Positions 1 to 62,499 are shown, numbered from the stretch's first letter. The stretch is DNA of 64,000 bases from Neoechinorhynchus agilis (GCA_051530055.1 CM121341.1:15540784-15604783); one strand, 5' to 3'. Made by a program: numbers and translations. The notes: generated from the sequence alone by a model not told the origin.

Positions 1-699
1 CTTTGGTCGTTGAATCTATTCTTAATGCCCATAACTTCAGTGCATTCCATATTACAAGACAAGAATTTTAGTTGGAATTTCAGTGAGGAAGAGTTATTAA
101 GGGCGCGATTAATAATTTTGGAGTTTCACTTTCTATATTCACTAGTGTGAATAAAAAGAACAAATTACTATTTTTAAAACATTTTTATGATAGAATCAAC
201 ACTGATGAATTAATAGAACTAAATGTTTAAAGAATATCTTCATCCCGAAAAATAAAAGAAGTTAAAATCACCAATGGTTCCCATATTCGAATTATTGCAA
301 TACAAAACCCTATATTCTCGGTACTTGAACGAGTATTTGAACATAAATGAATTATTTGTTGAAGAGAAATTATATTGCAACTGATTTTCATGGATTCTCT
401 ACTAGAAGATCCCGCCACTGTGCGGGACAAAGGCTAAAGAATAAGAAGAAGAATTGCCATTGATTGAAATTAAAAGCCTTACATTTCAAAGCATATTTTT
501 GCTGTGCTAACCACTAAAATCACGAAAATACAAGTTCGAATTGTTTTTTAGATCTTAAGACGACATAATTACAAATAGAAGAGGTAGCGTGAAATGTCAG
601 TTTTTTGTGCAGCGGAAAACGTTATATCTAATTGAGCTTTGTAGGATATTGGACCCTCCGGGCCCCCCGATGACCGAGGAGGGATCTTCTCGGATATAT

Positions 700-3130
700 A
701 TTCTAGGCGACGGGTTTGTGATTATGAACGGTTGCAAAAGATGGGAGAGCCGTATGCGAGGGAGGGTAAAATAAAGCTGTAGTAAAATTTGGAGAGATCA
801 GGCTAAAGGACTTAAATGGCGAAAGTGTAATGTGCGAATTTTTATAAAGGCATTCGGTGAGCCCGAGGAAAATTAACTGTGCAAATTTTAGAAGCTTTTC
901 TATGAAACATTTCAAAGCGACTGTGTTTGTGATGTGGACAGGTTGCGAAAGGCGAGATGACCGAAGGTGAGGGATGGGTAAAATATAGTTGTTGTGAAAT
1001 TTGGAGAGAGCGTGTGATTTGAATCCGAAATGGCGGAGGCGTTTGAGGAAGTAAATGGTGAAGCTATTACGTTTGAGGGAAAGTGTAATGTGCGAGTCCT
1101 ATTTAAGATTTGATTGAAATTGGATACCCAGAATTCTGAGCGAGATCGGGTTAGGATATGGAGGCCGCGGAAGATTGAGGGGATGTTTTCGAAGTATTTA
1201 AAGAAGTTCACTTAGAGTTTGTGGGTGGTGTAGAAATCTTCGATGTGTGTGATTTCGTTAAAGGTTAAGAAGAGGGAGAGGTGGAAGGGTGATTTTGTGA
1301 TGGGAGTGAGATCGTCGGCATATAAAGAAAGTTTAGCGTGAGAGGCGAGAGGTTTGAGGTCGTTTAGGAAAATATTAAAAAGAAGTGGTGACAGCACCTT
1401 GAGATACGCCTTTGGTGAGGGATAGAGTGATCGAGGAGGTAGATAGGCAGTGAATGTATTGTATGCGATTGTGAAGATAAGATTCGAGCCAGCGGATCTG
1501 CCACGCGTTTGGACCGAAATCTGAGCAGGCCCGGAGAAGGAGTGAATTGTCACCGGAGTCGAATTCTGTCGATAAATCAAATTGAATGAGACGGGTGACG
1601 TGGGAGGGATTATTGTCGAGGTTACGTAGAAGCGTGTCATAAATGCAAAGTAAGTCGTCGGTTGCAGAAAATCTGGGCCGTAAGAATGAGAAGTGAAAGA
1701 AGGCAAGATTTAAAACATTTTTCGATGAATTTTGAAGGAGCGGGTAGAATGGATATTAAACGGAATGATTCGGCGGAAATATGATGGCCTTTTTCGGAAT
1801 ATAAAAAGCTGAGGTTTATAATGTGGATAAGAAGGTCGGTGAGTTCGTAGATGATGTAGCAAAGAACTCAGTTTGGGATTTCTGATTACGAGGACGAATT
1901 TTTAGGTAATTTCATGAGATACTTTAGTACTTCATATGATGAAACTAAGGGGAGTATACGCGAGTTGACAAAAGTTTCGGATGTGGGCGTGAAAGATTGT
2001 GTGGTGTCCGATTTGAAGCAGTGATTGTAAATTGAGTCAGGACAGAGGTTCTGATTAATGGAATCTAGAACCTGTTTTAATTCAGTGGAGGACAAATTAG
2101 GACGGGATCCGGGTGGCGTAGACCAAGAGAGCCCTTCATGTAAAGTTGCCACCTGATCGAATTTTAGAGGAAAGGAAGTTTTTGCGGGCGATAAGTATTT
2201 TGTTAGTAAGTGTTTTTTGTAAACGAGGAAAGTCTGGAGAGTTATTTCGATGGCCTTTAGAAGCTTGCCTTTGTAGAAGTTTCAAAATTGGGGTTATCCA
2301 TGGAGGTTCCCGGTTGGAGATCCTAATGAATTTCTTGGGAATTGCGGAAGCTAGGGATTTTTTTATGATTGAGGTTAGGGAGGACATGGCCAAGGAAGGG
2401 TCATTTGTGTTGTCAGGATGAAAGTTATGAATCATATAATTGAAAAATTTCAAAAAATTGTGGATGTTATTATTCCGTTTATCCTAGAAGGGTAAGCGAG
2501 GTGACTTTTGACACTGAGATGGAGTGGATGGAGTGATAGGGGCAGAAGAGTGGTCAGGCTTCGTGAAGGGAAGGAGATTGCAGGCAGATGAGTGGGCGTC
2601 GATTTTGGTGAACACTTTGCCTAGGTGAGCGTCAAGACGTGTTGGGAAGCCAATTTGTTAACGCAACTTGGAGAAGGATGGCGGAGGAAATAGTTAATCG
2701 AAGTCTCCTGTAATTAGGAAATGGTGTGCATTTGCGGAGTTTATGAACTCCATCATGGACTGCAGTTTACGCAAATAGGACTCAGGACGAGACGCAAGAG
2801 GGCTGTATACGCCAGCAACTGTAAATTCTATAAGACCATTTCTTAGAGGAGAGGAGAAGTGGACTGCAATGAATTCTACATCTGGGTTTTGTAAAGAGCC
2901 TGTGAGTAGACGGTCTTTGCGGTACGTATGGAAGGAAAAGTACCAGGAAATAATGACTGAATTGCTGTTGACGAGGGTAAGCCATGTTTCTGTTAAGACG
3001 GCTACGTCGGGTTTTGAAGTATATAGAATGAGTGAAATTTCACACAGTTTAGGGAGGAGGCTTCGAGTGTTGAAGTATATTACGACGGGGAAGTTAATTT
3101 TAGATTCGGAGACACTGTGATGGAAATGAG
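700..3130 (-). mobile_element. Degraded CR1/L2-like LINE (APE endonuclease + RT)
   Basis: Minus-strand translation near 3110-2950 gives YFNTRSLLPKLCEI...PDVAVLTETWL (APE N-terminus); ORF 1212..1706 has LLFNIFLNDL and LSLYADDL (RT); many frameshifts. Confidence 0.85.
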
Positions 3131-5149
3131 GGAGATTGCAAGTATGTACAAGTGATTTTATGCGCTTCCCTGACCAAACCGGTAACTTTTATTCTGTTTT
3201 TCAAAATGTGGCCTTTTTCACGGCTAATAATTTTTCATTGGGCACGCAGCATACCAATCGGGGACAGGGAAGCGCATAAAATCACTTGAACGTCCCTCCG
3301 GATCCTCAGATATATCCGGGAGGCGGGACTCACCAGTGAGTTTCCTCCCTTCAGCCGTATTTCGGTCGGCGGTAACGGATTCGAATCCTTTGACTCAAAC
3401 AGGGATCAGAAGCATATATCCACTTGAGAATGCACAAACTCAAGAAAAATTATCAGCCGTAAAAAGGCAACACTTAAACACAATTTTTTATTGCGATCTG
3501 AGCAATTGCCTCAGATTCTCTATTTTTATTTGCTTGACTTAACTCGTTTTTGATCTTCAAAATTTAGAAGAAATCAAACATAAATGTTTCTAATGATTCC
3601 CTCTAAAAGTGATTAACTCTCCAGAAATTTTGATATTACGTGAACATTTTTATTCGCATATGAACAATTTACTTTAAGCACTTTGATCTACTTATTTTGA
3701 AGGCATAAATTGTATTAACACATTTTTCGCCGTTTATTCATGGATTATTTAGAACTGAACTGCAAAAAGATTTCATGTCTTTTAAGCATTTTTATCATCA
3801 TTTTGCCATCGAGTTTTCAACTTGAAAGTTGCCCATTTATGCGCGAGGTTTTTTAGTGTATCGATTGTAAACTCAACATTGATGAGACTGCTGTGCTAAA
3901 AATAAGGTATTGAAACAATAAGCTTAAAGATAGTGTTTTCTGTTTGCCGATGTAGGGATTGTTAAAATTTTAATTTCTCGCCATCTCGCGCTTCTTTATT
4001 TGTTTGCATTGTAGAACGAGTTTAAATCTTTTTTTCTATAAAGATTATTATGCTGATGGAAAAATTTCGCGCAGAAGTTCATAAGATGAATTTTTTATAT
4101 TTTCATGAAGGTGTTTGGCGATTAAAGTTAAAATTCCTCCAATTCAAAATCCACATTATAATCTTCGTAATGATTCAATAAAGTAATTAATGTTTCAGAT
4201 TGTTGATCATAAGTGTCCAAGAAATCTCCTCCACTGCAGACCCTGTGGCATCATTAAGTTTGTACAGAAGTCCGTCATCCTCACACGAATCATCCTCCTC
4301 CTTCAAATCTCCTGCGAAATTCAGACAACTTTCCGCTGTACAATTGAAACCGAAGTATAGAAAAGCGTTTGTTTTAAGCACGGGAGCGTATTTGAACATT
4401 ATAAAATTTTCCACTAATTCTTGAAGACTAAACGCAGTTTGGAATAAAGGGTCACCGCTATGGATCTGTATAGTACAAGTTGCTCAACTTGTGAACTGTC
4501 TGTATGATGAGACAAAGGTTCATGTTCGCATCATTGATCCTTCTTCGCTAATGCCATGAGACTAAGGAAAACGCTCTCTACTTGATCAAACGTCTTATCA
4601 TGGAAGCAATGCCAGAAGCTGTCAAAAGTCAACCGGTGCCAGATTTGACACTGACGAAGAAATCCAACAATTCGGATGACTGTGTGTTCACTGTTATTCG
4701 GTGAATCCAATAAACAGCAAAACGCTACGAACAATTATTGCCTTCAATGAAATTTCTGAAGGGAGTTCTACGATCTATGTTTGATTTTGAAAAGCCTGAC
4801 TCTATTCAGATCATTTAGAGGGTTATTTGCCAGTCGTCTAAATCACTGATGGTTTGCTGAACAAATACACCATGGAAAATGTGACTGATTTATATGGAAG
4901 TAGTATTCTGTATTTTATAACGTACTAGTAGACCTCGTTAAACAATAACTAGCAGAGTTATGCTGGTTGGGACTTGTTACTGGAAAGGTCCGTTTGAAAT
5001 GCTAAACGTTAGTAGGTTAAAGGGGCTCGGCCGGAAGTTCCCAAAGGTTATCAAGAATCAAATGAGGAAGGCTGCTGCAACTGTCAATCCTCACCATCGT
5101 CTCAACTTCTATTTTTACCGTGGGCCATGTAGATTTACGGCCGAGCAAT

Positions 5150-5760
5150 CGGATCTGGGATCACTTAGGGTTCTCATCTCCTGTTACTTTGTGAATGGAA
5201 AGCAATATATTCAGGAACGCACAGTGACGACATCGACGAATTCTCGAATTCGAGGCCGCCAACGACGACGATTTAGGTGATTTGATAAATATTGTTCGTT
5301 TATCCAGCTGAGACAAACTGCCATCCAAATGACAATATGTTTTTAGTGGTCTCCTGACGATTTTAAATTGTTTCGGGTGCATTAAATCTACGACAGATCG
5401 AAGATATTGATGATACATGCTAAAATATCGTCGAAGCTAGTTAAGGCATCCCGAGAAATCATTCGTTTAAAAGAATCCTCCAACGAAGGATTGGGATGCA
5501 CCACGATTACGGCATCCCGAGAAATCCTTCGTCTCAAAGAATCCTCCAACAAAAGATTGAGATGCACCACGATTACGGCTTCCTGAGAAACCTTCGTTTC
5601 AAAGAATGTTCGGTAATCAACTCAAACCGATCGGAATTGAGTGTCGCTTTTAATTAAAGTATCGTTAACACTTCGAATTTATTTGAATACTTCTGACGGA
5701 GCGACATTCGGCATTGTATTCCGGCGGATCGCTATTTTCACAATTCGACTTTAACCAAGG
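5150..5760 (+). repeat. Unclassified dispersed repeat with internal 66-bp tandem units; second copy at 45130-45790 (-)
   Basis: TCTCCTGTTACTTTGTGAATGGAAAGCAATATATTCAGGAAC at about 5180 matches the reverse complement of about 45705-45750; both copies carry about 2.5-3 units of GGCATCCCGAGAAATC...CACGATTAC. Confidence 0.8.
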
Positions 5761-10399: not shown

Positions 10400-11554
10400 A
10401 TGTCACGACGATTCGGTGGTCGTAATTTGCCTCCCCGTCAGACCCGTCCTCGTTACCGCACTCCCTTTCCAATGGGAATGTTTGATCCAATGGCGATTGC
10501 TTATGGAGTAGGTGCTCCATTAATGTACAATCCGACGGCGGCGGCAATGGCAGCCGCCTTCTTTAATCCAATGCAAGCAACAATACATCATCAATCTTAC
10601 GGATTTTCAACTGGAATGTACCCAAGGATGCATAATATCAATGGTGGTGGTAGTGGTGGCGGTGGTAGCCATCGGTTTTTTGCTCCATCGACGAATGCGA
10701 TGGTTCCACCGACTTCTTCTGCTTTAGCTCGTAAAAGGTCTGCCGGAGCTCCTGCGGCTCAAATCAGCTCAGACGACGACTATGCGACTGATGGAGATTC
10801 GGACGATGAGTCAAAGCAGGGTCAGCCTCCGTCGAAAAAATTAGCTAATAGTTCGGGGGAGGGAGCTGGAGGTGGTAGTGGAGGAACCTCGGCCACAAAG
10901 CGCTCCTCGTCAAAAACCCCCTATAACCATCCAGGGGTGACGGAGAAGCAATGTGAGCTCTGCGGTGTTGTTTTTACGTCTAAGGTTCTGCGCGATCAAC
11001 ATTTAAAAGGCAAGAAGCATAAAAAGAAACTTAAATTTCATATGAATAAGGGAGAAACCCCGTTTGATGTGCCGGATTCTCCAGATGGAGACGACGAAGC
11101 TGATCCTGCTGACGACGGAAATGATGAAGAAGTGGACGAAAGTGGAGATGTGGAAATGGAAGTCCTTGATCCGCATCTAGAATTCTTTGAAGAACTTAAG
11201 GCCCTTAAGGGAGCTATATTAGATCCAGAAAACGCTGAACGGATCTCGATTAATGCTTTTCAGTTGTTCAGAATAATGGAAGAGTATTTAAGGTACATCA
11301 CAAGAAGATACGTGAGTCCAGGAATCGATCCTACACGTATGTCATGGAATGAACTTTTGAACGTCTTAAAACGAAACACGATTGTGAAATTGAGCTCGAA
11401 CATGGAGAGGAAGCTGGATAACGTAAGACAGTTGAGAAATTCTGTTGTCCATTCTTTTACGGCCCCAGTCGATATACGCGTACTCACCAAAGTTATTAAA
11501 GTCGCTGAAGAAATGTACGAATGGGGTGTTCAGTTCAGAGATACCACACTTTAA
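10400..11554 (+). CDS. Intronless protein, 384 aa: low-complexity N-terminus, matrin/U1-like C2H2 zinc finger, acidic linker, C-terminal HEPN-like domain
   Basis: CELCGVVFTSKVLRDQHLKGKKHKKK (10952-11030); FQLFRIMEEYLR...WNELLNVLK...KLDNVRQLRNSVVHS with an R-x4-H motif at 11435-11452. Confidence 0.8.
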   Translation: MSRRFGGRNLPPRQTRPRYRTPFPMGMFDPMAIAYGVGAPLMYNPTAAAMAAAFFNPMQATIHHQSYGFSTGMYPRMHNINGGGSGGGGSHRFFAPSTNAMVPPTSSALARKRSAGAPAAQISSDDDYATDGDSDDESKQGQPPSKKLANSSGEGAGGGSGGTSATKRSSSKTPYNHPGVTEKQCELCGVVFTSKVLRDQHLKGKKHKKKLKFHMNKGETPFDVPDSPDGDDEADPADDGNDEEVDESGDVEMEVLDPHLEFFEELKALKGAILDPENAERISINAFQLFRIMEEYLRYITRRYVSPGIDPTRMSWNELLNVLKRNTIVKLSSNMERKLDNVRQLRNSVVHSFTAPVDIRVLTKVIKVAEEMYEWGVQFRDTTL

Positions 11555-11844
11555 ATGCGATTATCTTTGCTAAAAAGCGATTATGATGTTTGGCTTCAAA
11601 TTAAATATCGACTAAAATACCGTTTAGTGTGGTATTTCGCGCCTCTCGGTTTCTAACCATAAATCTTTAGGTGCGGATTTTTTTCTGAACGATCAGATAT
11701 TTAACTGAAGGCGAATTCTCTAACTAACAAATGGAATTTCACTAGTCAAAATCAAGGTATTGAAATAGAATTTCAGTGAATTTCTACGTTTTATTTGTGT
11801 GAGAAATCGCTTAAGGCTTCGTTTGTTTAATTTTAGTCTCAACT

Positions 11845-12365
11845 ATAGAATCAGATGCTTGGCTTAATGCTCTCCCAATTGCTTCTGTGGTTACACTTTT
11901 CTTCGACGAGACAGTGAAGATCGCAGTGTCTCTGAGACTTGGAGTACCGATATGCACATCCCTTCGCTGCCTTTACGGAACGACCGTGGAACCACCGGGA
12001 CGCAATGGTCTTGTCTGTCGGCAATCAGGCGGAAGGTGCTCACGACACGCCGAAATGAACGCAATTCTTAGTCGTGCCCTGAATATTTCTTTGCCAACTC
12101 GATGGCCGTAGACCAAACGGTGTTACAGCATTCCCTTGGCCAGAAGGCAAATGCCTTCGCAGCCAGTAGCATAAAATTTGCCACGGTTAAAACTGAGGGG
12201 GGGCAACAAAAGTGGGTCGAAATCATTATTTCGTTCCCTTTGGCGTTGAGACACTCCAATCGTTTGTTACCGTGGTGCAGGACCTGGTCAAGCAATTGTC
12301 CAAGAGACTCAGACGACTGGGAAGCGCATTACACCAGGACGGCAGCTGAATGATCCTGAGCAGTG
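11845..12365 (+). mobile_element. CRE family A fragment, internally deleted
   Basis: ETVKIAVSLRLGVPICTSLRC...RNGLVC...RHAEMNAILSRAL; same 3' end (ACACCAGGACGGCAG..GATCC) as other family A copies. Confidence 0.85.
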
Positions 12366-17507: not shown

Positions 17508-18386
17508 ATGGCTGATTCATCTAAGAAGGATCGACCAACGGAACCACCGTCTATATCTTGTTTGGAGCTTTCATCTTATCTTCCATTCAGTCCATATTTT
17601 ATCGATCCAGAAATGGCAGCTACCGCAGCAGCATTTATGCCACCAGGACAGGGGTGGGAGAATTCCCCCGAGTTCCAGAAGCTATTCAGAAAGCCCAAGT
17701 CCGGTATGATGCCTCCGTTTTTCTTCAATCCAGTAACGGCTGCGATTTCAACTGCGTCATTCGTCCATCCTGTATGTGTTAGTGGGCCCAGCGCTATCGA
17801 CAAAGAAGCAACTCAACTTTATGAATCCCACAACGGAGCGAATTTCAACACTCATCAACAAGTATTCGGATTTGTTGTATCTGCTTTCTACGCGACTCAA
17901 AAGATAGATCCCAGCTTTGTGTCCCAATGCTATAACACCAACGGCCGCCTTCAAGATGATTTACGGAACATAGAGGAGGACACTGATGTCGAGATGGAAG
18001 TTTTGGATCAACATCGAGAGTTTCTAGATGACCTACGCTCGATTGAAGTAAAGTCAAAGGATGCAGATGGTCACCAATGGTCAACCATTACATTCGAGCT
18101 CTTTCGTCTTATGGAAGAGTACCTTCGTTATATTACAAAGAAGTACGTAAGTCCGGGTCTTGATCCATCAATGATGCCTTGGAACGATCTTATAAATCTG
18201 CTGAAACGAAACACGATTGTACCAATGAGTCCAAGTTTATTCAGAAAACTTGACGACGTTCGACAATTAAGAAACTCTGTTGTACATTCATTCACCGTTC
18301 GTCCAGATCATGTACTTCTAAAGGAGCTTTTACATATAGCTTCAGATTTGTATCGTTGGGGAGCTCAGTTCAGAGATGCTAACTAA
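17508..18386 (+). CDS. Intronless HEPN-like protein, 292 aa, paralogue of 10400..11554 without the zinc finger
   Basis: DVEMEVLD.H.EF and EYLRYITKKYVSPGLDP..M.WN.L.NLLKRNTIV...RKLDDVRQLRNSVVHSFT closely match the first copy; RNSVVH at 18270-18287. Confidence 0.8.
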   Translation: MADSSKKDRPTEPPSISCLELSSYLPFSPYFIDPEMAATAAAFMPPGQGWENSPEFQKLFRKPKSGMMPPFFFNPVTAAISTASFVHPVCVSGPSAIDKEATQLYESHNGANFNTHQQVFGFVVSAFYATQKIDPSFVSQCYNTNGRLQDDLRNIEEDTDVEMEVLDQHREFLDDLRSIEVKSKDADGHQWSTITFELFRLMEEYLRYITKKYVSPGLDPSMMPWNDLINLLKRNTIVPMSPSLFRKLDDVRQLRNSVVHSFTVRPDHVLLKELLHIASDLYRWGAQFRDAN

Positions 18387-18455
18387 TAGAAATGCTTTTT
18401 CTTGAATTCAATGTAATAAATACACGTGTTATTATTTTCATTTGTTGGATTTTCA

Positions 18456-24649: not shown

Positions 24650-26100
24650 TTTTTTAGAAGAATGTAAAAAAATTGGCCTCAAACTGAACCCAAGCAAGTG
24701 CGAAATTTTGGTTTTGAATTGTGGGGACGAGGAACGCGCACAAATTTTGAGAGAGTTTGAAAAGGCCGCACCTAATATCCGACTTATCTCCAAGTCCAGC
24801 TTAGAACTGCTGGGAAGCTGCGTTCTCGAGGAGAATATGCAGGCTGATATCAGGAAAATCAGACCTTCCATTGATATCATCTGATCAAGGGCCTCTGAAC
24901 TTTTCCTCACGATGGTCTCTTCCTTTTAAAAAATTGCATCTTCATTCCACGCATCCTCCATAAACTGCGGTCAACCCCTTCCTTTCAATGTCAGCCCGAA
25001 TTGAGAGAGATTGATGGTTCTTTAAGCGATGGTCTATGCAAGATCCTTAATATTAAGCTCCCCGACACTGGCTGGACCCAGGCATCTTTGCCCACAAGCC
25101 ACGGAGGGATCGGTATTCGTGCCAGCTCAGCCATTGCGCTTCCAGCCTTTCTATCGTCTCTTAGTAGGTCCAAGCGCCTTTCCAGATTGATTTTGAAACA
25201 TAATTTTGAGGAGGACATCAGCCTGGAGCCCGCTCTTCATCTTTGGATGTCCCTGTCTAACCTCGACAAGATTCCAGACCTCCCGGAAAAACAGAAATCG
25301 TGGGACATTCCGTTAGTGGAGCGTGTTCACACCTCACTTTTTGACTCGCTCTCAGACGTGGATAGAACGCGATTAACTGCAGTTTCCTGCAAAGAGTCCG
25401 GCGCCTGGTTGAAAGCTGTACCATCAGCAAATATCGGTTCGAGATTAGACGGCGAGGCTCTCAGAATCGCAGTGTCCCTAAGGCTCGGGCTCCCGGTTTG
25501 TATCCCTCACACCTGCCGATGCGGGACGGAAGTCGACCCCTCGGGCAGGCACGGTTTAGCCTGTAAACGCTCAAGTGGCCGTTTTGCTAGACACACCGAA
25601 ATAAACGCATTGCTGAGCCGCGCTTTGAAAACGGCTAACTCTCCGAATATCCTCGAGCCTAGCAACATCTGCAGGATCGATGGCCGTAGGCCGGATGGAG
25701 TTACCGTTTTTCCTTGGAGCAGGGGCAGATGTCTAATATGGGACGCAACATGCGTCGACTCCCTTGCAGCCAGCAATCTGCGAGATGCATCCTCCGGGGC
25801 TGGGGGAGCCGCATCAGCAGCTGAGCTTCGTAAGGTTGCAAAATACGCCGATTTTACAAATTCTCATCATTTTGTCCCCTTCGCAGTGGAAACCTTAGGA
25901 GCTTTCGGGCGTGCGGCGAGGAGTTTTGTTTTCGAACTGGGGCATCGACTGATCAACTCGACCAATGACAGGAGGGCTCGCTCGTTCCTAGTACAGAACA
26001 TATCCTTGGCTATCCAGCGAGGAAACGCAGCGAGTGTCTTGGGGACGGTGAAGGACAATTCAGAATAATATAAGTTAACTTTTTTAAAAAAAAATGCTTA
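24650..26100 (+). mobile_element. CRE-like non-LTR retrotransposon, 3' part (RT thumb, CCHC, RLE endonuclease)
   Basis: ORF 25001..26068: WTQASLP..GGIGIR, CRC..RHGLAC..RH, RRPDG..PW..LIWDATCVDSLA, FVPFAVETLG, SLAIQRGNAASVLGT; A/T-rich tail. Confidence 0.92.
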
Positions 26101-33059: not shown

Positions 33060-36000
33060 AAACAAGCAGCTAACTGCGTTCATATCGCAATCGGCGTTCA
33101 ACCAATCATAGCCAGTTTCAAAAATCATGCGCAGTTTTCGTTCTGACGGAAAAAGCGTATTTAGTAGTGAACACCCTTCGAAAGCTACTCTCTAATCTCG
33201 AGCTACAACAATCACAAATCCTGGGAAACAACTTCCAGTCGACATCATCAAAGCAAATTCCAATATCAAATTACTTGTCTTCACCGACAAAAAAATGGCC
33301 ATACATAGCTATCTTCAAATCAAAACCAACCCTTCCCAAACAAATCATGTACGATCAAATAGTAAGCCCTTGGACTCGTTCTTTTAAAAACGATGGCATT
33401 AAAAGAATCGATCACTTAACATATTTCGCCGGCACGCTTAGAATTTATATGGTGTCACATACTTGGTTGGAAAAATTGGTCAACTTCTCTATTTCTAATC
33501 TTCCTAAGGAAGTGTATGATGTTTCATATAGCTCTCAAAAAGTACAATTTCTGGTGAAAGGAATTGATCCTTCAATCACCAATGAAGAGCGGGAAGATTT
33601 CGAGCAATCGTTCAATTGCAAGATCAAGTTTTTTCTTAATTCAAGGAGGACAGGTCAACCCATCTCGATTGTTATGGTGGAGGGACAAAGACAAGTTCGC
33701 GACGACTTATGCACACAACAATTTTGCTCGTTCAATTGCTTTGAAATTAACTTTGCGATGAAGTCGAACCATGAACAGGATAACTTCATATTCCCACAAT
33801 GCACCATCTGCCAGCAATGGGGCCACTGGTGCCAAAATTGCCCCAATCCATCCTTAAAAAAATGTTGCCACTGCGCAGATACCTCCCATGGTTCGGATCA
33901 GTGTATTAAGTCAAAAAAGCAGTGTGTGAATTGTCATGGACAACATTCGTCCTTCTATAAAGGCTGTCCTGAGTTCAAGAAATATTGTGCTTGGGCTAAA
34001 AAGTCTCTCAATGCCGGTGGAGACAACAGGAGCAAATTCAGGAATCCAACCGAGCAGTCAGCAGCGAAGCTCAACTCAGCGCTTCCAGCAGCCTCCTATC
34101 GTCAATTTGACAACTCTACTTCGGAACATTCCGGCAATGCGCCGTCAGCTCAAGTTGTGACCATGGATTTTTTGGAGAGCAAATTAGAAGAAGCCTGCAA
34201 CAAATTTCTCATGATCATGCAAGCTCGAGGCATTGTTGGCTTTCGAAAGGAAGATCTGTACCCTAATCGATAATTTGACAAACCTTCCGGCTCTTTTCTC
34301 CTCTTGCTTATCAAAACAAGATCCAGCAAAACTCAAAAGATCCATTACGTCTGACGAGGATGTAAGAGTAGAAAAAAAGTCAAATGGTGGATCTCGCTCT
34401 AATGAAGAGGAAGATGTTATGATGGATATTGATGAATCAACTTCAGAATTCGTAGCCAGAATAATCGAAACCCAATCCAGGCTAATTGATAGCGGAACAG
34501 CCAACCTGATCTCAAATGCCAATTCAAGGAAGCCTTGACTCAATGGCTCAGGAGAAGGTAGGGAATCTTAGGGTGTTGCAGTGGAATTGTGGGGGTGCGA
34601 CCAACCTTTCTAAACTCTCGAGATATCTACCTGGAATTTCTATTGTGCTCATTTAAGAATCGAAGAGTGTCTTAAATATAGATCAGCTCTTTTCTCATTT
34701 ACCTCATTTAAACTCTTCGGCTTTTATCCCTTTCGTCTCTCCTCCTTATGAACCTAATTCACAAGGCCTAATTTCTATCTTTCATTCCTACCTCAGTCCC
34801 TCCGTGGTCACGTCCTATTCTTGCAAGGAATTGTCATATAGTATCTTCAAAAAATTTAACAATAAGAAATTTTTCTCACTTGCGAACATATATATAAGGC
34901 CAGGTTTTATTCATCGTGCCCATGTGAAGGAAAAAATCAAATGGCTTTTAAGGGCTAACATTGATCTGATTGTGGGAGATTTCAATGATCCTTCTTTAAG
35001 ATGGTCTCGGGCAATTGTAAACGCAGTCAAACCTTCCCACTCTCTTATCTTGCCCAATAATCCGTCGTTCCACAATATTACCACCAACAGTCATTCCTTC
35101 TTGGATCTAGTTATATTGAAAAATGTCTTGAATCTTTCAATCGATTATGATCACCAAGTTTCCACCTTCGACCTCTTAGGACATGACATTTTAATTTGGT
35201 CCTTGGGTCACATTGACAGACTACGCAAGGTGTATCATTTATCACCTTTAAATTTAGCGTTTCGGCTAGTTTGCGAGAACATTTTCTCACACTCACTTTT
35301 GGACTGCAATCTGTCAGATTTCCTACCTTTAGCTAACTCCTTCGTCAATAAGGCCGCTAGTACTTTTTATGTCGTAATGTTAAAACTTTCTCACGCCCTT
35401 ATGTGAGCCGATCACATCGTTTTCTAGGACGCCAACTTTATGCTGCCAAAAGATCGGGGGATACTCTTTTATGCAAAACTCTTTCGAGCCTTCTTTGGGC
35501 TGCCCGCTGCCGACAGCAACAACGCAGAGATGCAATCTCTCTTGCGACACTCAACCCTTATTCTTCCAAATGGTGGCGTACCTTTTCAAATAAAGGCCAA
35601 ACACCTTGGAAGTCGAAACTAGCTGCCTGGTTAAAATCCACAACATTGGGGGATATTCTTTTTCAAATTTTTGACTTTCATTCCGCGGGCTCGACTACCA
35701 ACGTGCCATCAATTTGTTTTCGCAAACTACTTGGTAATCGCACGGATATCACCTTAAAAGATATTCTCGAAGTATGGTCAACAAATCCGAAGTTGGGATC
35801 GTCTAATGGCTGCCCAGGGACAAAAATCTTCACACTGCATCCTAAAAGCTGTGTATCCCTCTTAGCCAAATCTATGCTGCATTCCTCCCCTTACGCTCGG
35901 GGAGAGATTAATGTCTCCAGACGTATTTTCTTGGTTAAAAATGGCAGGAAAGCCATTGTTGAACCAAAAGACGTTCGCCCTATCTCGCTTCAAAATCCCC

Positions 36001-36470
36001 TTGTAACCATTTATGAACGCGCACTTGCTAATAGGTTGAGATCCTTCATTAATGAACATAATTGCATCTCTTCAAATTGTCATGGTTTTCTAAAAGGGAA
36101 ATCAGTTCACTCTGTCTTAGCAGTTATTTACTCCAATTTTTCTTGCTCTTACAAACTCTTGCGAGCTATGTTTGCCGTGGACATTTCTCAAGCTTTTGAT
36201 AAGATTTCACTCTCTTTTATTATTGAGATGCTTGAATTTTTCAGTATTCCTCACAATTTAATTACACGTATCCACAATATTTTATTTACAAAATCTTTTT
36301 GCTTAGAAGACGACATTTCAAAGACACTATATTATCCTTCCAATGGTGTTCCACAGGGGTCACCTCTGTCACCTATTCTCTTCCTTTTGGCGTCACAATA
36401 TTTGATTCAAAATTTTAAAATAAGGGCCTCTCTCACGTCATCTCCGCCTACAGAGCAGCCAAAATGAAAA
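33060..36470 (+). mobile_element. I/Jockey-like LINE, same family as 13670-17350; 3'-truncated
   Basis: ORF1 33167..34273 with three Cys/His knuckles; ORF2 from 34542 LRVLQWNCGG; KDVRPISLQNPLVTIYERALA, AVDISQAFD, GVPQGSPLSPILF; ends before YADD. Confidence 0.9.
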
Positions 36471-39847: not shown

Positions 39848-41236
39848 ATGCGAGAGTGCATCAGTATTCACATTGGTCAATGTGGAGTTCAAATTGGAAG
39901 CGCTTGTTGGGAGCTGTATTGTTTAGAACATGGACTGGATGCGCAGGGTAATAAGCTCGAGTGTTTACAACAAGTAGCAGATGAGTCGTACCAGACTTTT
40001 TTCTCAGAAACTCGTTGCGGTAAATATGTACCACGAGCACTGGTGGTGGACACCGAGCCTTCGGTGGTCGATGAGATACGAGTTGGAACTTATCGTCGGT
40101 TATTTAATCCCAACACCCTAATAACGGGAAAAGAAGATGCTGCCAATAATTTTGGCCGTGGATATTACACCATTGGTAGAGAAATGCTCGATGCTTCAAT
40201 GGATGCTCTTAGAAAACAGTCAGAGCTCTGTGATGGCCTCATTGGTCTATTCACATTTCATGCTTTTGGAGGTGGAACCGGTTCGGGATACACTGGTTTG
40301 GCAATGGAAAGAATGTCTGATGAGTATGGGAGTCTGACAAAGCTTCAGTTTTCGGTGTACCCATCGCCCCTTTTAGCCACTGGGGTAACGGAATCTTACA
40401 ACAGCGTCTTGCACACCCACACTGCTATGGAGCATTCTGATTGTGCATTCTGTTTGGACAATGAAGCACTTTACGAAATTTGCAGAAGATACCTCCACGT
40501 TGAATCACCAAGTTATGTCAATTTGAACCGGATAATTGGGCAGGTGGTTAGTTCCATAACTGCACCTCTTCGATTCCAGGGTCCAATAGCTGTAGATCTC
40601 AATGAATTTCAAACAAATCTTGTCCCATTTCCGAGAATTCACTATCCAATGGTTACCTACGCTCCGCTAATCAGCGAGCAAAGATCCTGCCATGAACTTT
40701 TGAGCACATCGGAACTAACTTCATCACTATTTGATCCTAATGCTCAAATGATTAAATGTGACGCTCGAAATGGAAAGTATATGGCTTGTTGCATTCTATA
40801 TAGAGGAGATGTGTATCCTTTGGACGTGAACGTAGCCATCGCTTCGCTAAAAAAGCGAAAACTTCTGAATATGGTGGAGTGGTGTCCAACTGGATTTAAA
40901 ATAGGACTTAATAATCAGCCTCCAACGTATGTACCCGGAGGAGATATTGCTCGAGTTCCTAGGGCTGCATGTTTATTGGCAAATACATCAGCAATTGGGC
41001 AATCATGGGAACGTCTTAATAACAAGTTCGATGCTCTGTTCAATAAGAGAGCGTTTATACATTGGTACATTGGAGAAGGCATGGATGAACAGGAATTTCA
41101 TGAAGCCAAAGCCAACCTTACGGCGCTGGCTGCCGATTATCAAGCTATCATCAGTGAAGCTGATTTCGAGGAAGCTGGAGAGGAAGCCCTTAACGAAGAA
41201 GATGAAGAAGGGGGATTCGAGGAGTTTGAATATTAA
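39848..41236 (+). CDS. Divergent intronless alpha-tubulin
   Basis: [63 protein letters not shown], acidic tail ending EY. Confidence 0.97.
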
Positions 41237-44225: not shown

Positions 44226-44487
44226 CCTCCTCCTCCTCCTCCTCCTCCTCCTCCTCCTCCTCCTCCTCCTCCTCCTCCTCCTCCTCCTCCTCCTCCTCGT
44301 CTTCATTGTACTCCACGCCTTCATCGTCCTCATTGTACTCTTGGTCTTCATTGTTCTCTTCCTCCCGGAGAAACCTTTGAAATACACGTATTAAATGCAT
44401 TGATTTATCGTTCGTAATATCACGAAGAGCTTCTCGAACGTTAAGACGGAACTGACGTTCGCCGTTTACATTATCTTGGTTATCCAT
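44125..44487 (-). CDS. Candidate acidic D-box protein (REALRDITN) with a poly-Glu tail, running into duplicated ValRS intron sequence
   Basis: MDNQDNVNGERQFRLNVREALRDITNDKSMHLIRVFQRFLREEENNEDQEYNEDD...E-run. Confidence 0.4.
   Translation of the reverse strand: MDNQDNVNGERQFRLNVREALRDITNDKSMHLIRVFQRFLREEENNEDQEYNEDDEGVEYNEDEEEEEEEEEEEEEEEEEEEEEEEEGCILFTLVGLNKFFIKHKQRFFKYEKCYYLNAS
44226..44298. repeat. (CCT)n microsatellite, about 24 units
   Basis: Directly visible; begins exactly at the duplication breakpoint. Confidence 0.97.
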
Positions 44488-45129: not shown

Positions 45130-45790
45130 GGGCGACCCGTTGAGATACAATGCCGAATGTCGCTCCGTCACAAGTATTCACGTAAATTTGAAGTGTTCAA
45201 GGGACTGTCATTTAAAGCGACACGTCATTCCGATTGGTTTGAGTTGATTATCGAGCATTCTTTGAAACGAATGAATTTTCAGGATGCCGTAATTGTGGTG
45301 CATCCCAATTCTTCGTCGGGGGATTCTTTGAAACGAAGGATTTCTAGGGATGCCGTAATCGCGGTTCACCCCAATTCGTCGTTGAAAGATTCTTTGAAAC
45401 AAATGATATTCGGGGATGCCTTCAATTGCTTCGATGGTATCTTAGCGTCCATCATTAATATCTTCGATCTTGTCGGAGATTTAATACAACCGAGACAATT
45501 TCAAACCGTTAGGAGACCACTAAAAAAGATATCGTCATCTGGATGTCAGTTTGTCTTAGAGGGGATAATCAAAATTGTGATTGTTGTAATTATTAAAATA
45601 AATCGTATTTACCAAATCCTACTATGTTGTCAGCGTAACTATCACCTAAATCGTCTGGCTGCCTCGAATTCGAGAACTCGTCAGTGTCGTCCTCTATGTG
45701 TTCCCGAATATATTGTTTTCCATTCACAAAGGAACAGGAGATGGGGACCCCAAGTGATTCCAGGGTGCACTGGACCACTTCGACGCAACT
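45130..45790 (-). repeat. Second copy of the 5150-5760 repeat, abutting the truncated Penelope-like RT
   Basis: Sequence match as above; 66-bp units at about 45280-45430. Confidence 0.8.
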
Positions 45791-49116: not shown

Positions 49117-52100
49117 TCATTGTATAGAATTTATAGCTCGTTCATTATGATCATTCCACTTATTGTCGACATCCATTTTGCTGTAAAGACGTGAACAGCA
49201 AGATGCTTTGACACTTATAAGTCCTTTTGCTTCATTTAAGGGCAAAACAACATCTGATTCATCGGGTATATTTTCTTCACAAAATTCAACATACTGAGTA
49301 CTTGATAATTTTTCGATAACTTCTTTGAGATCTTTAACTTGCGAAATATCCTTTCGGTTAAGTCGCAACTTTATTTCAGTTTCTTTTCCACAACCAAACA
49401 TTGTCTTCAGCTTTAATGAACAGTAGATGATATCCCTAGTTAAATCGATCAGATCAAAGTAATCTGGTCCTTCAACTGATCTGAAAAACGAATCGTCAAA
49501 GTACTTCTCCTTAGCCAGGTCATTTGTCTGTTTCAAAACGATTTCCCACACATTCTGGCAAACGCTTGGAATAATAGGATAATGGAGACGTAACATTGCG
49601 GATAATAATTGACGAAGACACTCTTTTGATGGTTTAATGATCTTAGTTGCTTCAATGTAAAAATCAGAAAAATCACCTTTGAACAGTTGCTGAAGTTTTG
49701 ATGATAGTTTTAGGTATTCGAATTCTGTTAAATCATTCCGGAGTTCATTTGCAGTTTCCTTTATTCGATGCAACATCCATCGGTCAACAATTGATAAGCG
49801 TCCGTCTATTATGTCGACGGAGTCGGCAAGATTATGAAGCATTTAGGTAATAGCACTTTTCGTATTTAAGGAAACGCTGTTTATGTTTAATGAAAAATTT
49901 GTTCACACCAACCCAAGTAAAGAGAATACATCGCTTAAGCCGACTCCATCAAATTAATGCTTGAAAGCTTGGATGAGTTTTACTTCACAATTGATTAGCA
50001 TTTAGGGATAAACAATGGTAATAAATCGATGGAAATATGTTACAAATGTTAAATAACGTCGATCGCCTGATTATTAATTAACTATGGTCTTCGTGTTACC
50101 CTTTGACTGATCAATTTCTAGAGGTTTTCATATTTAACGGTCAATTCAAGAAAAAAACGGCAAAACCAATTCAGTTTTAAATCAGCTAAATTTTTCTGAA
50201 GTCGAGATTAATATACTCAACGTCATGTTTATCATTGTTTAAAAGTTTCGTTGAACTTAAATACTCGAAAGAGCAGATTGTAAAACAGTTTAAAAAATTA
50301 CTTGTTACAAACCTAAAAATCGACATTCCTTTCTAATCAATAGTGAAGCTTAAACTACAGCTATTTTCGTCATCGTAGGATTCCAAAATACCATAAATAT
50401 ATCGACAAGCATTCCAGAACTTATTAACATACTTCTGTCCGTCCGCGAATGACCTTTCAGCGTCCATTTTAATCGTTTCTTGCTTGAAATAATAATTGAG
50501 ACACGCATATCGAAACGCGTCAACTCCGTATTTTTCTACGATGTCAATAGGATTAATAACGTTTCCCTTGGACTTTGACATCTTCTTACCCTTCGTATCC
50601 ACAATTAATCCATGAAGTAAAATTCTTTTAAATGGTAAGCGATTGCTTAAAGCAAGACTCATCATAACCATTTTAGTTACCCACGGGGTTTGTGTTGGGT
50701 TTTTGTTGTTGTGGTTGGGTGGTGTGGTGTTTGTTGTTTTGTTGTTGTGTTTTTGGTTTTTTGTGTTTTTTTTGTTTGGGTTGTGTGTTTGTGGTGGGTG
50801 TGTGGTTGTTGGGTTTTTTGTTTTGGGGGTTTGTGTGTTGTGTTTTTTTGTTTTTGGGTTGAAGTTTCTTTTCCGCTGACATAGTGGTACTCTGTAACTC
50901 TTGTTCGAGTGAACTCGACTTAAATAACCTAGCTGAGATAATCATCCAGCTCTAAGTTCTCTTGCTTCATACACATTGAATCCGTCCACAGCTGGAACTC
51001 TGCAGCGCATACAATCATTAGAATCGATTACCGATTTTCGAAGAAGATTGTGAGTGTTCCCGATTTCGAAATCCATGAAGTCATGAGCAGGACTAATTTT
51101 AACAATTCCTGTGCCTTTAAAACTGCGGCATGGTTCAACGTAAACCCAAGAGAGAACCACGGTCGCCAAGTATATCCGGATAGACGCGCTTATCCGCTAT
51201 AAAAGGAATTCTTTCACCAGTCAATGGATTACAAGCCATTCGCCCTATAAGATGAGACTTTGAAACATCGTCAGGATTTACGGCAAGAGCAACATCACCG
51301 AATATCGTCTCGGGTCTTCTTGTAGCTACCTCGACCCAATCGCCAGTGAAGTCATCGATGTCATACCGAACAAAAAACATTCTACCAAGCTCTATAGAAC
51401 GACCGCTTGGCAACCGATATTTGGTCCCCCCTATCATTTCCACGAGTTTTACTTCAGTGTCGGACACCGTCGTCTGTAGAAAAGAACTCCAATTCACGAG
51501 TTGTTCCTGTCTTCTAATAAACGGTTTGTTATCTCGCGATTTCTTGTATCGTAACTTTTGAAACGAGTCAACAACGAAATTATTAAAACTATCATTTAGA
51601 GTGTAGTATTCTCTGCACATGTTTGTTCGATCTTTTAAGTAAAACAAATATTCTAAATTTTAAATGGCCATATCAAAGATTGAAAGATCGTCCATTAACG
51701 CAAAACTTTTGGTAAGAATATAACAGAGAAAAATAAATTGCGTAATACCTGTTTTTAAGTAATTTGAATCACTAAGAATTTTGGGAGCAAAATCTCCAAG
51801 AAAAGAGATTTTTAAAGTTAAAATAAGATACCAATTCGTAAAACTAAGTTTAAATATTAATTACACTTCTAAACGTATCTTTCATTCAGAAAACTAAGGC
51901 GATTGGAAAAATAACTTTTGAACGCAGACAACAAAAAGGTAGTAAATATCTAAAACTTTAGTTCGAAATCGAACGAACATGCCTATCCCAGCATAGTTTC
52001 ACTCCCAATTTCTTCAACTGAGACTTCATTTCTTGTCTCCTTTTATCCGTCCATGCTCTGATCGTGCATTGATCGATTTTTCTAGAATCTCTCAAAGCGC

Positions 52101-54409: not shown

Positions 54410-55590
54410 TTGTAGATGAATTTTGAATTGAATGCTGCGAAATGCGAGATTTTAGTGATGAACGTGGATGATGTGGCATCCAGCCAACTTATCGTGAAAT
54501 ATTTTCAGAACTTGGTCCCCGGGATAGAGCTGATCACTTTAGATTGGTTGAGTCTTCTAGGAAGTTGCATTTTTGGTTCTAATTTCGAAGCAGCGATTGC
54601 CAATCTTCAACCGCCACTTTCGGTACTGTGCGAACGAGTTGATGAATTATCTTCACATGAGGCTCTTTTCCTGATCAAGAACACCATTTTCATTCCAAAA
54701 CTGCACCTTTTTAGACATAAAGATAAGCCGGCAAAATTAGACGAGACGGTGATAGCCTATCTCGAGAAAACTTTAAATACTCAGCTGCAAGACAAGGCCT
54801 GGCGTCAAGCGTCCTTGCCTTTATCGTCCGACGGTTTGGGTATCCGCAAAGCAGCTGATATTTCTCTGCCAGCTTATTTGGGATCGTATGAAGCAAGTCG
54901 CTTAGTAGTTAAATCCGTTCTGTGCGAGAATTACACTTTGGATGAAGATTTCATGGAGGCGCTTAATCTTTGGTGTGGAGATTCAGGCAGCGAACAGGTA
55001 GCCGTGCGTGACGAGACAGTAAGGATTGCACTGAGGCTTGGGGTACCGATGTGCACATCCCATCGCTGCCGTTGCGGAGCGACCGCCATGGTATCGTCCT
55101 TCGGCAATCAGGCGAAAGGTACTCACGCTATTCCGAAATGAACGCAATTGTTAGTCGTGTCCTGAATACTGTGAATGCGCCCAACATCCTAGAGCCTAGC
55201 AATATTTGCCGACTCGATGGCCGTAGGCCGGACGGTGTCCCAGCATTCCCGTGGGGATAAGGAAAATGCCTTCTCTGGGACGCCACGTTCGTGGACACGC
55301 TCGCAACCAGGGGGAGTTGCAACCGCCGCGAACGCAAAAGGACAAAATACAGGGACCTGAGCCGGAATCATTATTTTGTTCCCTTTAGTGTCGAGACGCT
55401 CGGGTCATTTGGTACCGCGGCACAGGACCGTGTTAAGCAATTGTCTAAGAGATTGAGATGAATCACTGGCGATCAGAGGGCAGGAGCATTCCTTCTGTAA
55501 AACATAAGTCTGGCTGTGCAACGAGGGAACACTGCATCAGTCCTTTCGACCGTTACACCAGGACGGCAGATGAGTGATCCAGAGCGGTGA
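54410..55590 (+). mobile_element. CRE family A remnant (longest family A copy)
   Basis: LNAAKCEI, LLGS, WRQASLPL..GLGIRKA, RRPDG..PW, FVPFSVETLG and the family A 3' end. Confidence 0.9.
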
Positions 55591-57229: not shown

Positions 57230-58420
57230 ATCTACGAGCAAATGATTTCGTATTTCAAGGAACTAAATATAGGAAATATTTTCTGCTCGCGTGGCACCAT
57301 TTTATTAATCATCTCGTCTATTTCGAATTTCCTTTGCCGTAAAAAGCCACTATTATACATTCCGATATTAACTATGCAATCACCACAGCCCGCAGTCGCC
57401 ATCACGTTAGCAGCATTGCCTCGTTGAACTGCAATCGAGATATTTTGTCGCAGGAATACACCAGTTCGTGCGTCGCCGGTCGTTTCTCTAAATTTCTTCG
57501 AGAGATCCTGGGGCAGAGTGAGCGCCGAGCTGCAAAGCGCACCATACGTCTCTACTCCGAAGGGGGCAAAATAATGGGCCCTCTCTAAATCCCTATATTT
57601 TTGTACCTTCCTCCCTTCCGCTGCACTGAATGCACCTTCAGCGATTTCGAGAGAGTACGGAATGTTGCTTACTGCGAGGGTGTCCACACCCCGCCACGGA
57701 AAGACCGAAATTCCGTCAGGTCGACGACCGTCTAGTCGACAAAGATGAGTGGGTTCCAAGATGTTGGGGAAGTTCGCCGTTCCCAACGTCCGAGAAATTA
57801 CGCTGTTGATCCCAGAATGGCGTGAGAACCTTCCTCCTGACTTTAGGCAAACGAGACCGTGTCGCCCGAAAGCATCAACCAAAGACCCGCATCGACAGCG
57901 ATAGGGCGTGCATATCGGGAGACTTAGTCTTAAGGACACTGCGATCCTCGTTACCTTATCAGTAAGAAGAGTTCCCACTGGTGCCAGAGGAACAGCCTCC
58001 AGCCATGCCCCGATTCTCGTGTCGAAACTGCCAACAATCTAGCTCGGACGACCCCATCGCGAGAACCTGAAAGTAGAGAGCTCTAGCGACCAGAGGTCTG
58101 TTCCAGATAGACTGTCTGAGGCCATTCACGGGAACATGGTTTGCGCCCGTCTGCTAGCACCATTCTTCAACTGCCACCACAGTCTTGGTCAAGACAAAAC
58201 TTTTCCCTCAGAATTTTCTGCGCTATCGGTTGACTTCCCTCATACGATCCAAGGAAGGCTGGTCCCCAGATGACGCAGGTAATGAAGCTTGCCGCCACGC
58301 CTCATCTGAGAGCTGGACATTTAAAATACGCTCGAGACAAGCCCTCACCTCGTCGTCGAGCTTAGCCAATCCTTCCTTGCTTTCAAAATGGAAACGTATT
58401 TTCAAATTTCAATGACATCA
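57230..58420 (-). mobile_element. CRE family B remnant
   Basis: AWRQASLP, RIAVSLRL.LPIC.PYRCRCG...RHGLVC...RFSRH, RRPDG, ISIAVQRGNAA. Confidence 0.9.
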
Positions 58421-62480: not shown

Positions 62481-62499
62481 TGGAATAAATTGAGCTGAT

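Follow-up and report, generated by a model that had tools for sequence, protein, structure and literature searches.

The locus described here raises the question of whether an acanthocephalan encodes a ribonuclease (RNase) that combines a HEPN domain with a single zinc finger. It lies in a stretch of 64,000 nucleotides from Neoechinorhynchus agilis (GCA_051530055.1 CM121341.1:15540784-15604783), which we call the window; all positions are counted from its first letter. The gene in question, gene A, was read on the plus strand as an uninterrupted open reading frame (ORF) of 384 amino acids, from an ATG at 10400 to a TAA at 11552-11554. An earlier note, made from the sequence alone, had pointed to this ORF, to a zinc finger, to the stretch RQLRNSVVH and to an E..LR motif in its product, and each of these features was found in its place. 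We think, with somewhat more confidence than doubt, that the product is a modular protein in which a disordered tail, a zf-met finger and an acidic linker precede a catalytically competent HEPN domain, and that it would act as a metal-independent, dimeric RNase tethered to structured or double-stranded RNA (dsRNA).

The C-terminal domain and the zinc finger

The AlphaFold2 model of residues 248-384 was all-helical, with a predicted local distance difference test score (pLDDT) of 87.2 and a predicted template modelling score of 0.83. When the model was compared with the PDB by Foldseek, the matches ranked 1-17 were all HEPN proteins (probability 0.98-1.0), and non-HEPN helical proteins appeared in the list at low probability only. 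The top group consisted of HepT toxins (5yep, 6m6u, 6m6w and 7bxo), 1wwp, AF_0298 (2hsb; template modelling (TM) scores 0.63/0.68) and YutE (1ylm). The lower matches were TT1696 (1ufb), HepS, other AMPylated HEPN toxins, ST0689, Csm6 and the HEPN domain of AbiA. The confident model and the unbroken run of HEPN proteins at the top of the list bear out the fold that had been suggested for this domain.

We also compared the domain with curated profiles. The RTasHEPN profile of PADLOC (PDLC03820) matched all four known members of the family, that is, gene A and the three relatives described below, with a best E-value of 3.9e-5; the CARF-HEPN, Csx1 and DUF3644 models came next. Matches to the Pfam HEPN clan were sub-threshold (HEPN, E 0.0068; HepT-like_2, 0.013; HEPN_Cthe2314, 0.007-0.024; RiboL-PSP-HEPN, 0.12), and the HepT_toxin model of NCBIfam gave an E-value of 0.023. 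A profile of the family searched against PDB sequences gave chance matches only, to PPR and NAP1 proteins.

The HEPN domain has been defined by an Rx4-6H motif at the end of helix 3, an acidic residue in helix 2 that typically belongs to E-x3-[KR], an insert between helices 2 and 3, and a polar residue after the Arg (PMC3710099). All of these diagnostic features were found in the domain, and each motif was invariant in the four sequences. R346 and H351 are located at the end of helix 3 (residues 333-352), where it runs into the loop between helices 3 and 4, and the polar residue after the Arg is N347. Together with these three residues, E294 and R298 are also invariant in four of the four known members. 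RQLRNSVVH corresponds to residues 343-351 (nucleotides 11426-11452) and MEEYLRY to residues 293-299. Both motifs had been recognized from the sequence, but the E..LR motif had been assigned to the first helix, whereas the model places it in helix 2. Within the 137 amino acids of the domain the catalytic motif falls at R99/H104, compared with R97/H102 and R102/H107 in HepT chains of 130-147 amino acids, as implied by the names of mutants. Taken together, we regard the C-terminal domain as very probably a HEPN fold.

Two further conserved stretches were seen in the domain. A lead-in, D-[VI]-[EV]-M-x3-D-x-H, precedes helix 1 (residues 248-259; window 11141-11176, plus strand); all four proteins share its D250, M253, D257 and H259. 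The motif does not belong to the canonical HEPN signature, and confidence is low (pLDDT 59) over the ten residues that open the domain model, where it lies. Within the family, conservation is highest in the insert between helices 2 and 3, YVSPG.DP..M.WN.L.N.LKRNT (residues 304-332; window 11315-11395, plus strand), the very part that in other HEPN domains is usually conserved least. Its conservation here therefore suggests a family-specific interaction or substrate surface.

A HEPN fold need not be an enzyme. The domain could be a non-catalytic module for RNA or nucleotide binding or for dimerization, which would make the protein a structured-RNA-binding adaptor. Several eukaryotic HEPN domains, for example those of human sacsin and Swt1, have been inferred to be inactive binders (PMC3710099), and a most conserved insert would also suit an interaction surface beyond the active site. 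Inactive HEPN domains, however, typically lose the Arg, the His or both, while R346, N347, H351, E294 and R298 have stayed invariant over deep divergence, as in active families. We therefore think this alternative improbable, and that the HEPN domain of gene A is, by analogy with those families, probably a catalytic RNase.

The full-length predicted model of the protein resembled beads on a string, with ordered modules between disordered stretches (Table 1). The pLDDT was below 50 at residues 1-44 and 55-176. No Pfam domain was found in the N-terminal region of about 176 amino acids, and this region is evolving fast, with 20-32% identity to the relatives.

The finger has the spacing C185-x2-C188-x12-H201-x5-H207, begins with C185-E-L-C188 and ends with H-L-K-G-K-K-H. 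It matched zf-met of Pfam (PF12874) with an E-value of 1.7e-7 and 31.7 bits, the gathering score being 21.2, and with 20.2 against 22.6 the zf-C2H2_jaz model stayed just under its cut-off. The best PDB sequence matches were the dsRNA-binding fingers of Xenopus ZFa (1zu1) and ZNF346/JAZ (2mkd), and the finger of SCAPER was also matched. The matrin/U1/JAZ type that had been assigned to the finger is upheld by these matches. In the model the finger is a beta-beta-alpha unit, after which a Lys-rich helix extends to about residue 216, and residues of about 180-216 are moderately confident (pLDDT of about 75).

Gene status, relatives and origin

An open frame of 384 codons in DNA of about 40% GC would not, as we infer, be a product of chance. 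We take gene A to be a gene because it is conserved under purifying selection. The product of the ORF is 100% identical to the database protein P0001. It starts with MSRRF, and an orthologous cDNA-like contig, L001, whose in-frame stop is upstream, opens with MSRQF; the start codon of gene A is supported because the two begin alike. An in-frame TTG at 10391, upstream of the ATG, is irrelevant to the ORF call.

The homology search gave three relatives, namely P0004 of N. agilis, P0003, a hypothetical protein of Pomphorhynchus laevis, and P0002, which is encoded by L001, a Logan contig of 1,662 nucleotides. N. agilis belongs to the Eoacanthocephala, and P. laevis is a palaeacanthocephalan. L001 (run SRR6291294) is cDNA-like with untranslated regions, and its ORF of 521 amino acids runs from nucleotide 47 after an in-frame stop. 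Because its DNA is just 74% identical to that of P. laevis, we assign it to a third species. Comparison of these sequences thus places orthologues in at least two other acanthocephalans.

The gene model of P. laevis has five exons with GT-AG borders, and both the finger and the HEPN domain are encoded in the last exon. Gene A had been described as intronless, which holds for the N. agilis copy, but not for its orthologue. The GenBank model, GJ496_000333 (on WNNJ02000469.1; 10001-10249 of the locus sequence L002), joins an exon 1 encoding an LSM domain to the finger-HEPN gene. This fusion is probably an annotation artefact that draws in a neighbouring gene, because exon 2 opens with Met-Ser, and both L001 and gene A start with Met-Ser-Arg without an LSM domain. 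The P. laevis orthologue is spliced, with four to five exons. A tblastx comparison of the P. laevis locus with the window showed that the gene alone is shared, and conserved synteny was not found.

Synonymous sites were saturated in every pairwise comparison, the proportion of synonymous differences (pS) being 0.83-0.94. The ratio of nonsynonymous to synonymous rates (dN/dS) was not computable with dS saturated in every pair, and we report the proportion of nonsynonymous differences (pN) against pS. The pN value was 0.11-0.34 in the C-terminal domain and 0.29-0.56 upstream of it, and the domain is 50-84% identical among family members. The saturated pS and the low pN of the domain indicate long-term purifying selection centred on the HEPN domain, in both N. 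agilis paralogues. From its sequence, gene A is a real, conserved animal gene. The animal origin that had been assumed for it agrees with the GT-AG introns of P. laevis, the cDNA-like orthologue with its untranslated regions and the eukaryotic neighbours in the window.

We considered whether the ORF is borne by a retroelement or is decaying, and is not a host gene at all. Genes A and B are uninterrupted, in contrast to the introns of the P. laevis orthologue, and retroelement fragments lie between and around the two copies; other genes of the window, such as that for alpha-tubulin, are single ORFs too, however. Only two copies were found in the 64 kb, and neither reverse transcriptase (RT) nor gag nor integrase is attached to them. 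The acanthocephalan orthologues lie in different genomic contexts, selection has been strongly purifying and a full-length cDNA-like orthologue exists. This makes the alternative extremely unlikely, and we rejected a transposon-borne ORF on the grounds of low copy number, purifying selection and the cDNA-like orthologue.

The second N. agilis gene, gene B, is a tandem paralogue that lies 6 kb downstream of gene A, with retroelement fragments in between. Its HEPN domain is 55-56% identical to that of gene A, and all the catalytic residues are kept. The zinc ligands are absent from gene B, and only the equivalents of F192, H207 and F213 align. The two proteins have in common a low-complexity motif, AAAF..NP, at the N-terminus. 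Since gene B keeps the HEPN domain and the N-terminal motif and has lost the zinc ligands, the combination of finger and HEPN seen in gene A is probably ancestral and gene B a derived, finger-less form.

To our searches the family is confined to acanthocephalans. An exhaustive phmmer search with the domain over 1.84 billion representative proteins, including rotifer proteomes, returned P0001, P0004 and P0002 only. A tblastn search against plasmids and phages gave chance matches only (E >= 1), degenerate-pattern scans of 185,579 prokaryotic genomes, viral contigs and metagenomes gave no relatives, and nothing was found at E < 0.3 in the BFVD viral fold library. With no relative turning up among prokaryotes, plasmids, phages, viruses or metagenomes, a donor cannot be named. 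The horizontal acquisition proposed in the earlier note received no positive evidence from these searches, and the gene of P. laevis is spliced and multi-exonic. Horizontal transfer is thus unsupported, though still conceivable, since HEPN domains diverge fast. The HEPN domains of animal sacsins fall in the nucleotidyltransferase-associated HepT/HEPN-T set (PMC3710099). Because that is, by fold and profile, the nearest group to gene A, domain shuffling within animals is a live alternative.

Proposed function and genomic surroundings

Catalysis in many bacterial toxins, and likewise in RNase L, Ire1, Las1, Cas13 and Csm6, is the work of HEPN domains. By analogy with RNase L/Ire1's KEN domain and with PrrC/RloC, HepT, Csm6, Cas13 and Las1, the HEPN domain of gene A would act as an endoribonuclease that needs no metal and generates ends with a 2',3'-cyclic phosphate. 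His351 would activate the 2'-OH, and Arg346, Asn347 and Glu294 would support the transition state. Most likely the protein forms a dimer, in which the two Rx4H motifs are predicted to make up a composite active site. As with the fingers of ZFa, JAZ/ZNF346 and U1C-like proteins, the finger and the Lys-rich helix that follows it may hold the nuclease on RNA that is structured or double-stranded; such targeting by the finger is possible, and we propose it tentatively. We speculate that the acidic linker may serve as an autoinhibitory mimic of nucleic acid and that the finger-less paralogue B may act alone or as a heterodimer partner.

Several points weigh against this reading. The HEPN call rests on the convergence of several weak-to-moderate lines of evidence plus the motifs: the Foldseek E-values are modest (7e-3 at best, with TM scores of 0.5-0.68), and every Pfam and NCBIfam match to the HEPN clan lies under its curated cut-off (E 0.007-0.16). 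Some HEPN domains retain the polar residues yet are non-catalytic binders. A single zf-met finger can also serve for contacts with proteins or for binding to single-stranded or ribonucleoprotein targets, like the U1-like fingers of spliceosomal and pre-ribosomal proteins. The nuclease motifs of gene B persist without any finger, meaning that the finger is not essential to the function of the domain. The paper on the genome and transcriptome of N. agilis, with its supplement, says nothing of this gene. Literature searches on HEPN domains in Acanthocephala gave nothing.

As to the biological role of such an RNase, two possibilities carry about equal weight for us, with perhaps a small lead for the first: regulated cleavage of endogenous structured RNA, in processing or decay, and defence against dsRNA from viruses or transposons. 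Processing or decay of endogenous RNA fits equally well because of the strong purifying selection, the two copies, the lack of immune adaptor domains and the conservation across acanthocephalan classes. A defence role, for which lineage restriction, duplication, the precedent of CXorf38 and the likeness to defence HEPNs speak, we consider unlikely.

The idea set out in the earlier note, a dsRNA-sensing innate-immune RNase of antiviral or anti-transposon function on a HEPN domain taken horizontally from bacteria, should be weighed against the same evidence. The nearest folds and profiles are indeed those of prokaryotic toxin and defence proteins (HepT, RT-associated HEPN and CARF-HEPN), but HEPN structures in the PDB are overwhelmingly prokaryotic, so that a bacterial nearest fold is partly a sampling effect, and neither prokaryotes, plasmids, phages, viruses nor metagenomes yielded a relative of a gene that is spliced in P. 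laevis. The family is lineage-restricted and tandemly duplicated, and the window is rich in retroelements; its expansion, however, stops at two copies, which are under strong purifying selection with saturated dS. There is precedent in the dsRBD-HEPN protein CXorf38, for which an action on viral dsRNA has been proposed (PMC3710099), while adaptor domains of the Death, NACHT, TIR and CARD type were not found by Pfam in the present proteins. We judge this idea to be quite unlikely.

A bolder form of it can also be stated. An acanthocephalan dsRNA-triggered immune RNase might have evolved, or been taken over from a prokaryotic HEPN of the toxin or defence kind that has diverged beyond tracing; the finger would sense viral or transposon dsRNA and license the HEPN dimer, and the paralogue and the linker would regulate it through heterodimerization and autoinhibition. 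We hold this to be a decidedly improbable scheme. If it were true, a parasite lineage from which many conserved genes are gone would have arrived anew, with other components, at a logic like that of RNase L and CXorf38.

The reading that we favour, an RNA-tethered HEPN RNase, would have its own interest. The HEPN superfamily, its chemistry, fusions of dsRNA binders to HEPN domains and repeated recruitment in eukaryotes are already known, and new eukaryotic recruitments show how RNA-cleaving modules become wired to sensors. If active, gene A would provide a compact eukaryotic HEPN RNase of about 130 amino acids with a simple RNA-binding tether, easy to assay in vitro. As a lineage-specific gene it may also be of interest for the biology of acanthocephalans, whose hosts are fish and other vertebrates and whose genomes are strongly reduced.

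The features of the two genes are collected in Table 1.

Table 1. Positions of the features of genes A and B in the window
Feature	Position	Strand	Basis
Gene A, complete coding sequence with zf-met finger and HEPN domain, stop included	10400..11554	+	ORF; P0001 100% identical; start backed by cDNA-like contig
N-terminal region, about 176 amino acids, low-complexity, predicted disordered; Pro/Ala/Gly-rich, with an acidic Ser/Asp patch SSDDDYATDGDSDDE and basic patches	10400..10927	+	pLDDT; no Pfam domain
Single zf-met / U1-matrin-JAZ-type C2H2 finger, residues 184-207 (C185, C188, H201, H207)	10949..11020	+	Pfam; PDB hits; model
Acidic disordered linker, residues 217-250 (DSPDGDDEADPADDGNDEEVDESGD)	11048..11149	+	pLDDT <50 over 217-246; sequence reading
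HEPN domain (very probable), residues 248-384: lead-in, helix 1 258-274, helix 2 276-305, helical insert 316-326, helix 3 333-352, helix 4 359-383	11141..11551	+	AlphaFold2; Foldseek; profiles
Auxiliary E-x3-[KR] motif, E294-x3-R298 (E294-E-Y-L-R298), in helix 2	11279..11293	+	invariant 4/4; model
Predicted Rx4H catalytic motif, R346-N347-S-V-V-H351, C-terminal end of helix 3, followed by S352-F353	11435..11452	+	invariant 4/4; model
Possible polyadenylation signal ATTAAA, 46 nucleotides past the gene A stop	11600..11605	+	sequence reading
Gene B, tandem paralogue of 292 amino acids (P0004), without functional finger	17508..18386	+	homology search
Predicted catalytic motif R-N-S-V-V-H of gene B	18270..18287	+	sequence comparison
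Possible polyadenylation signal AATAAA, 29 nucleotides past the gene B stop	18415..18420	+	sequence reading

The neighbours of gene A in the window are eukaryotic, namely genes for a protein with CID and RRM domains, an alpha-tubulin, an aminoacyl-tRNA synthetase and Fis1, together with fragments of retroelements without long terminal repeats (non-LTR). The alpha-tubulin (39848-41236, plus strand) is an unusually divergent single ORF with only about 60-62% identity to canonical animal alpha-tubulins; identity stands at 68% with another N. agilis tubulin from the same contig and at 65% with a P. laevis tubulin.

A same-strand run of ORFs at 33167-36467 (plus strand) consists of a gag-like ORF with CCHC knuckles (33167-34273), an unassigned ORF at 34804-35406 and an RVT_1 reverse transcriptase (35403-36467), and looks like a fairly complete non-LTR retrotransposon. 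On the minus strand, 1212-1706 holds a further RT fragment, which contains a YADD motif. Another domain, encoded by a repeat, occurs in four copies or fragments (11887-12111, 25001-26068 and 54416-55141 on the plus strand and 57232-57978 on the minus strand) with the motif IAVSLRLG.P.C....C.CG..VD..G.HGL.C..S.GR..RH..IN.; its longest copy has no Pfam match. A C-terminal domain belonging to some non-LTR retrotransposon family is the probable identity.

Simple repeats and base composition were also noted. A 66-bp tandem repeat is found in 2.5 copies each at 5441-5607 and 45257-45420, about 40 kb apart and in opposite orientation, and the first consensus, reverse-complemented, roughly gives the second. 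At 44226-44298 there is a perfect (CCT)24 microsatellite. A degenerate G/T-rich repeat (50689-50861) is presumably intronic, because it lies between ORF fragments of the aminoacyl-tRNA synthetase gene (49117-51647, minus strand). GC skew is strong and opposite at the two ends of the window (+0.37 and +0.23 over 1-4000 vs -0.26 over 62001-64000); at the left end it is probably a strand bias borne by an element, because it coincides with the minus-strand RT fragment.

Comparison with known HEPN systems

That gene A would match none of the described eukaryotic HEPN families had been proposed from the sequence, and the comparison agrees: Pfam gave no match to KEN, Las1, Swt1, DUF4209 or CXorf38-type domains, and the Zn-ribbon insert of CXorf38 is missing. 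We rejected membership of the KEN (RNase L/Ire1), Las1 and C6orf70/DUF4209 families, for which no profile matched at E <= 10, zf-met being the sole other domain found. No support was found either for the suggested affinity to Swt1/DUF4145 (PF13643), and membership there was rejected too: across the four proteins Pfam returned neither of them at E <= 10, no PIN domain was present, and the nearest folds and profiles are those of the HepT/HEPN-T group and the RT-associated defence HEPN.

Among structures, the closest are HepT, the toxin of type VII toxin-antitoxin systems (DUF86; 5yep, 6m6u, 7bxo and 7ae6), and HEPN-T (PF05168; 1wwp, 2hsb and 1ufb), which provide the top Foldseek matches. They share with gene A the compact size of about 130 amino acids, the order of helices and an Rx4H motif at almost the same linear position, and by analogy with them gene A may be likened to a metal-independent dimeric RNase. 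There is no significant sequence similarity, the HepT-like_2, HepT_toxin and HEPN profiles matching weakly, and gene A differs in being eukaryotic, spliced in P. laevis and joined to a zinc finger and long disordered regions. Membership of HepT itself was rejected. The motif reads R-N-S-V-V-H-S-F, with an invariant F353 in place of the Tyr of RX4HXY that is AMPylated by MntA; no nucleotidyltransferase gene of the MntA type was found among the neighbouring ORFs, and HepT_toxin scored 14.6 bits against a cut-off of 60.

The RTasHEPN of defence-associated reverse transcriptase systems is the sole profile with a significant match, which takes in the insert as well as helix 3 as far as the catalytic His. 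This match spans only about 42 residues, and the context of RTasHEPN is prokaryotic while gene A is an animal gene. Unlike RTasHEPN, gene A has no RT partner; the RT ORFs of the window are ordinary retroelement fragments that lie several kb or more away.

In design, the nearest animal protein is CXorf38, which likewise combines a dsRNA-type binding module with a HEPN domain predicted to be an active RNase (PMC3710099). CXorf38 proteins are found in deuterostomes and cnidarians, belong to a Swt1-like clade, carry a Zn-ribbon within the HEPN domain and have dsRBD and NACHT/DEATH partners, and those with a dsRBD have been proposed to act on viral dsRNA (PMC3710099). Membership of this family was rejected for gene A: its insert (residues 306-332) contains no Cys, dsRBD, NACHT and DEATH gave no match, and no sequence relationship was detected.

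The fingers of ZFa, JAZ/ZNF346, SCAPER and U1C-type proteins resemble that of gene A in the C-x2-C-x12-H-x5-H spacing and the H-x2-G-K-K-H signature of the helix. ZFa and JAZ, however, use arrays of fingers, whereas gene A has a single one, and these proteins carry no nuclease domain, while the finger of gene A sits with a HEPN domain. The combination of zf-met with a HEPN domain predicted to be active was not found in the 2013 HEPN census (PMC3710099) or in searches of the N. agilis and acanthocephalan literature.

RNase L/Ire1, Las1, Swt1, C6orf70 and sacsin belong to the same superfamily as gene A, with the same predicted chemistry, and the HEPN domain of sacsin is a member of the HEPN-T group (PF05168), the source of the best Pfam match of gene A. 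Gene A lacks their kinase, ankyrin, PIN, transmembrane and Hsp90-like modules, and the eukaryotic HEPN RNases are pan-eukaryotic, whereas gene A is found in Acanthocephala only. The family of gene A is best regarded as a new HEPN family, restricted to acanthocephalans, whose architecture of zf-met finger and HEPN domain is novel.

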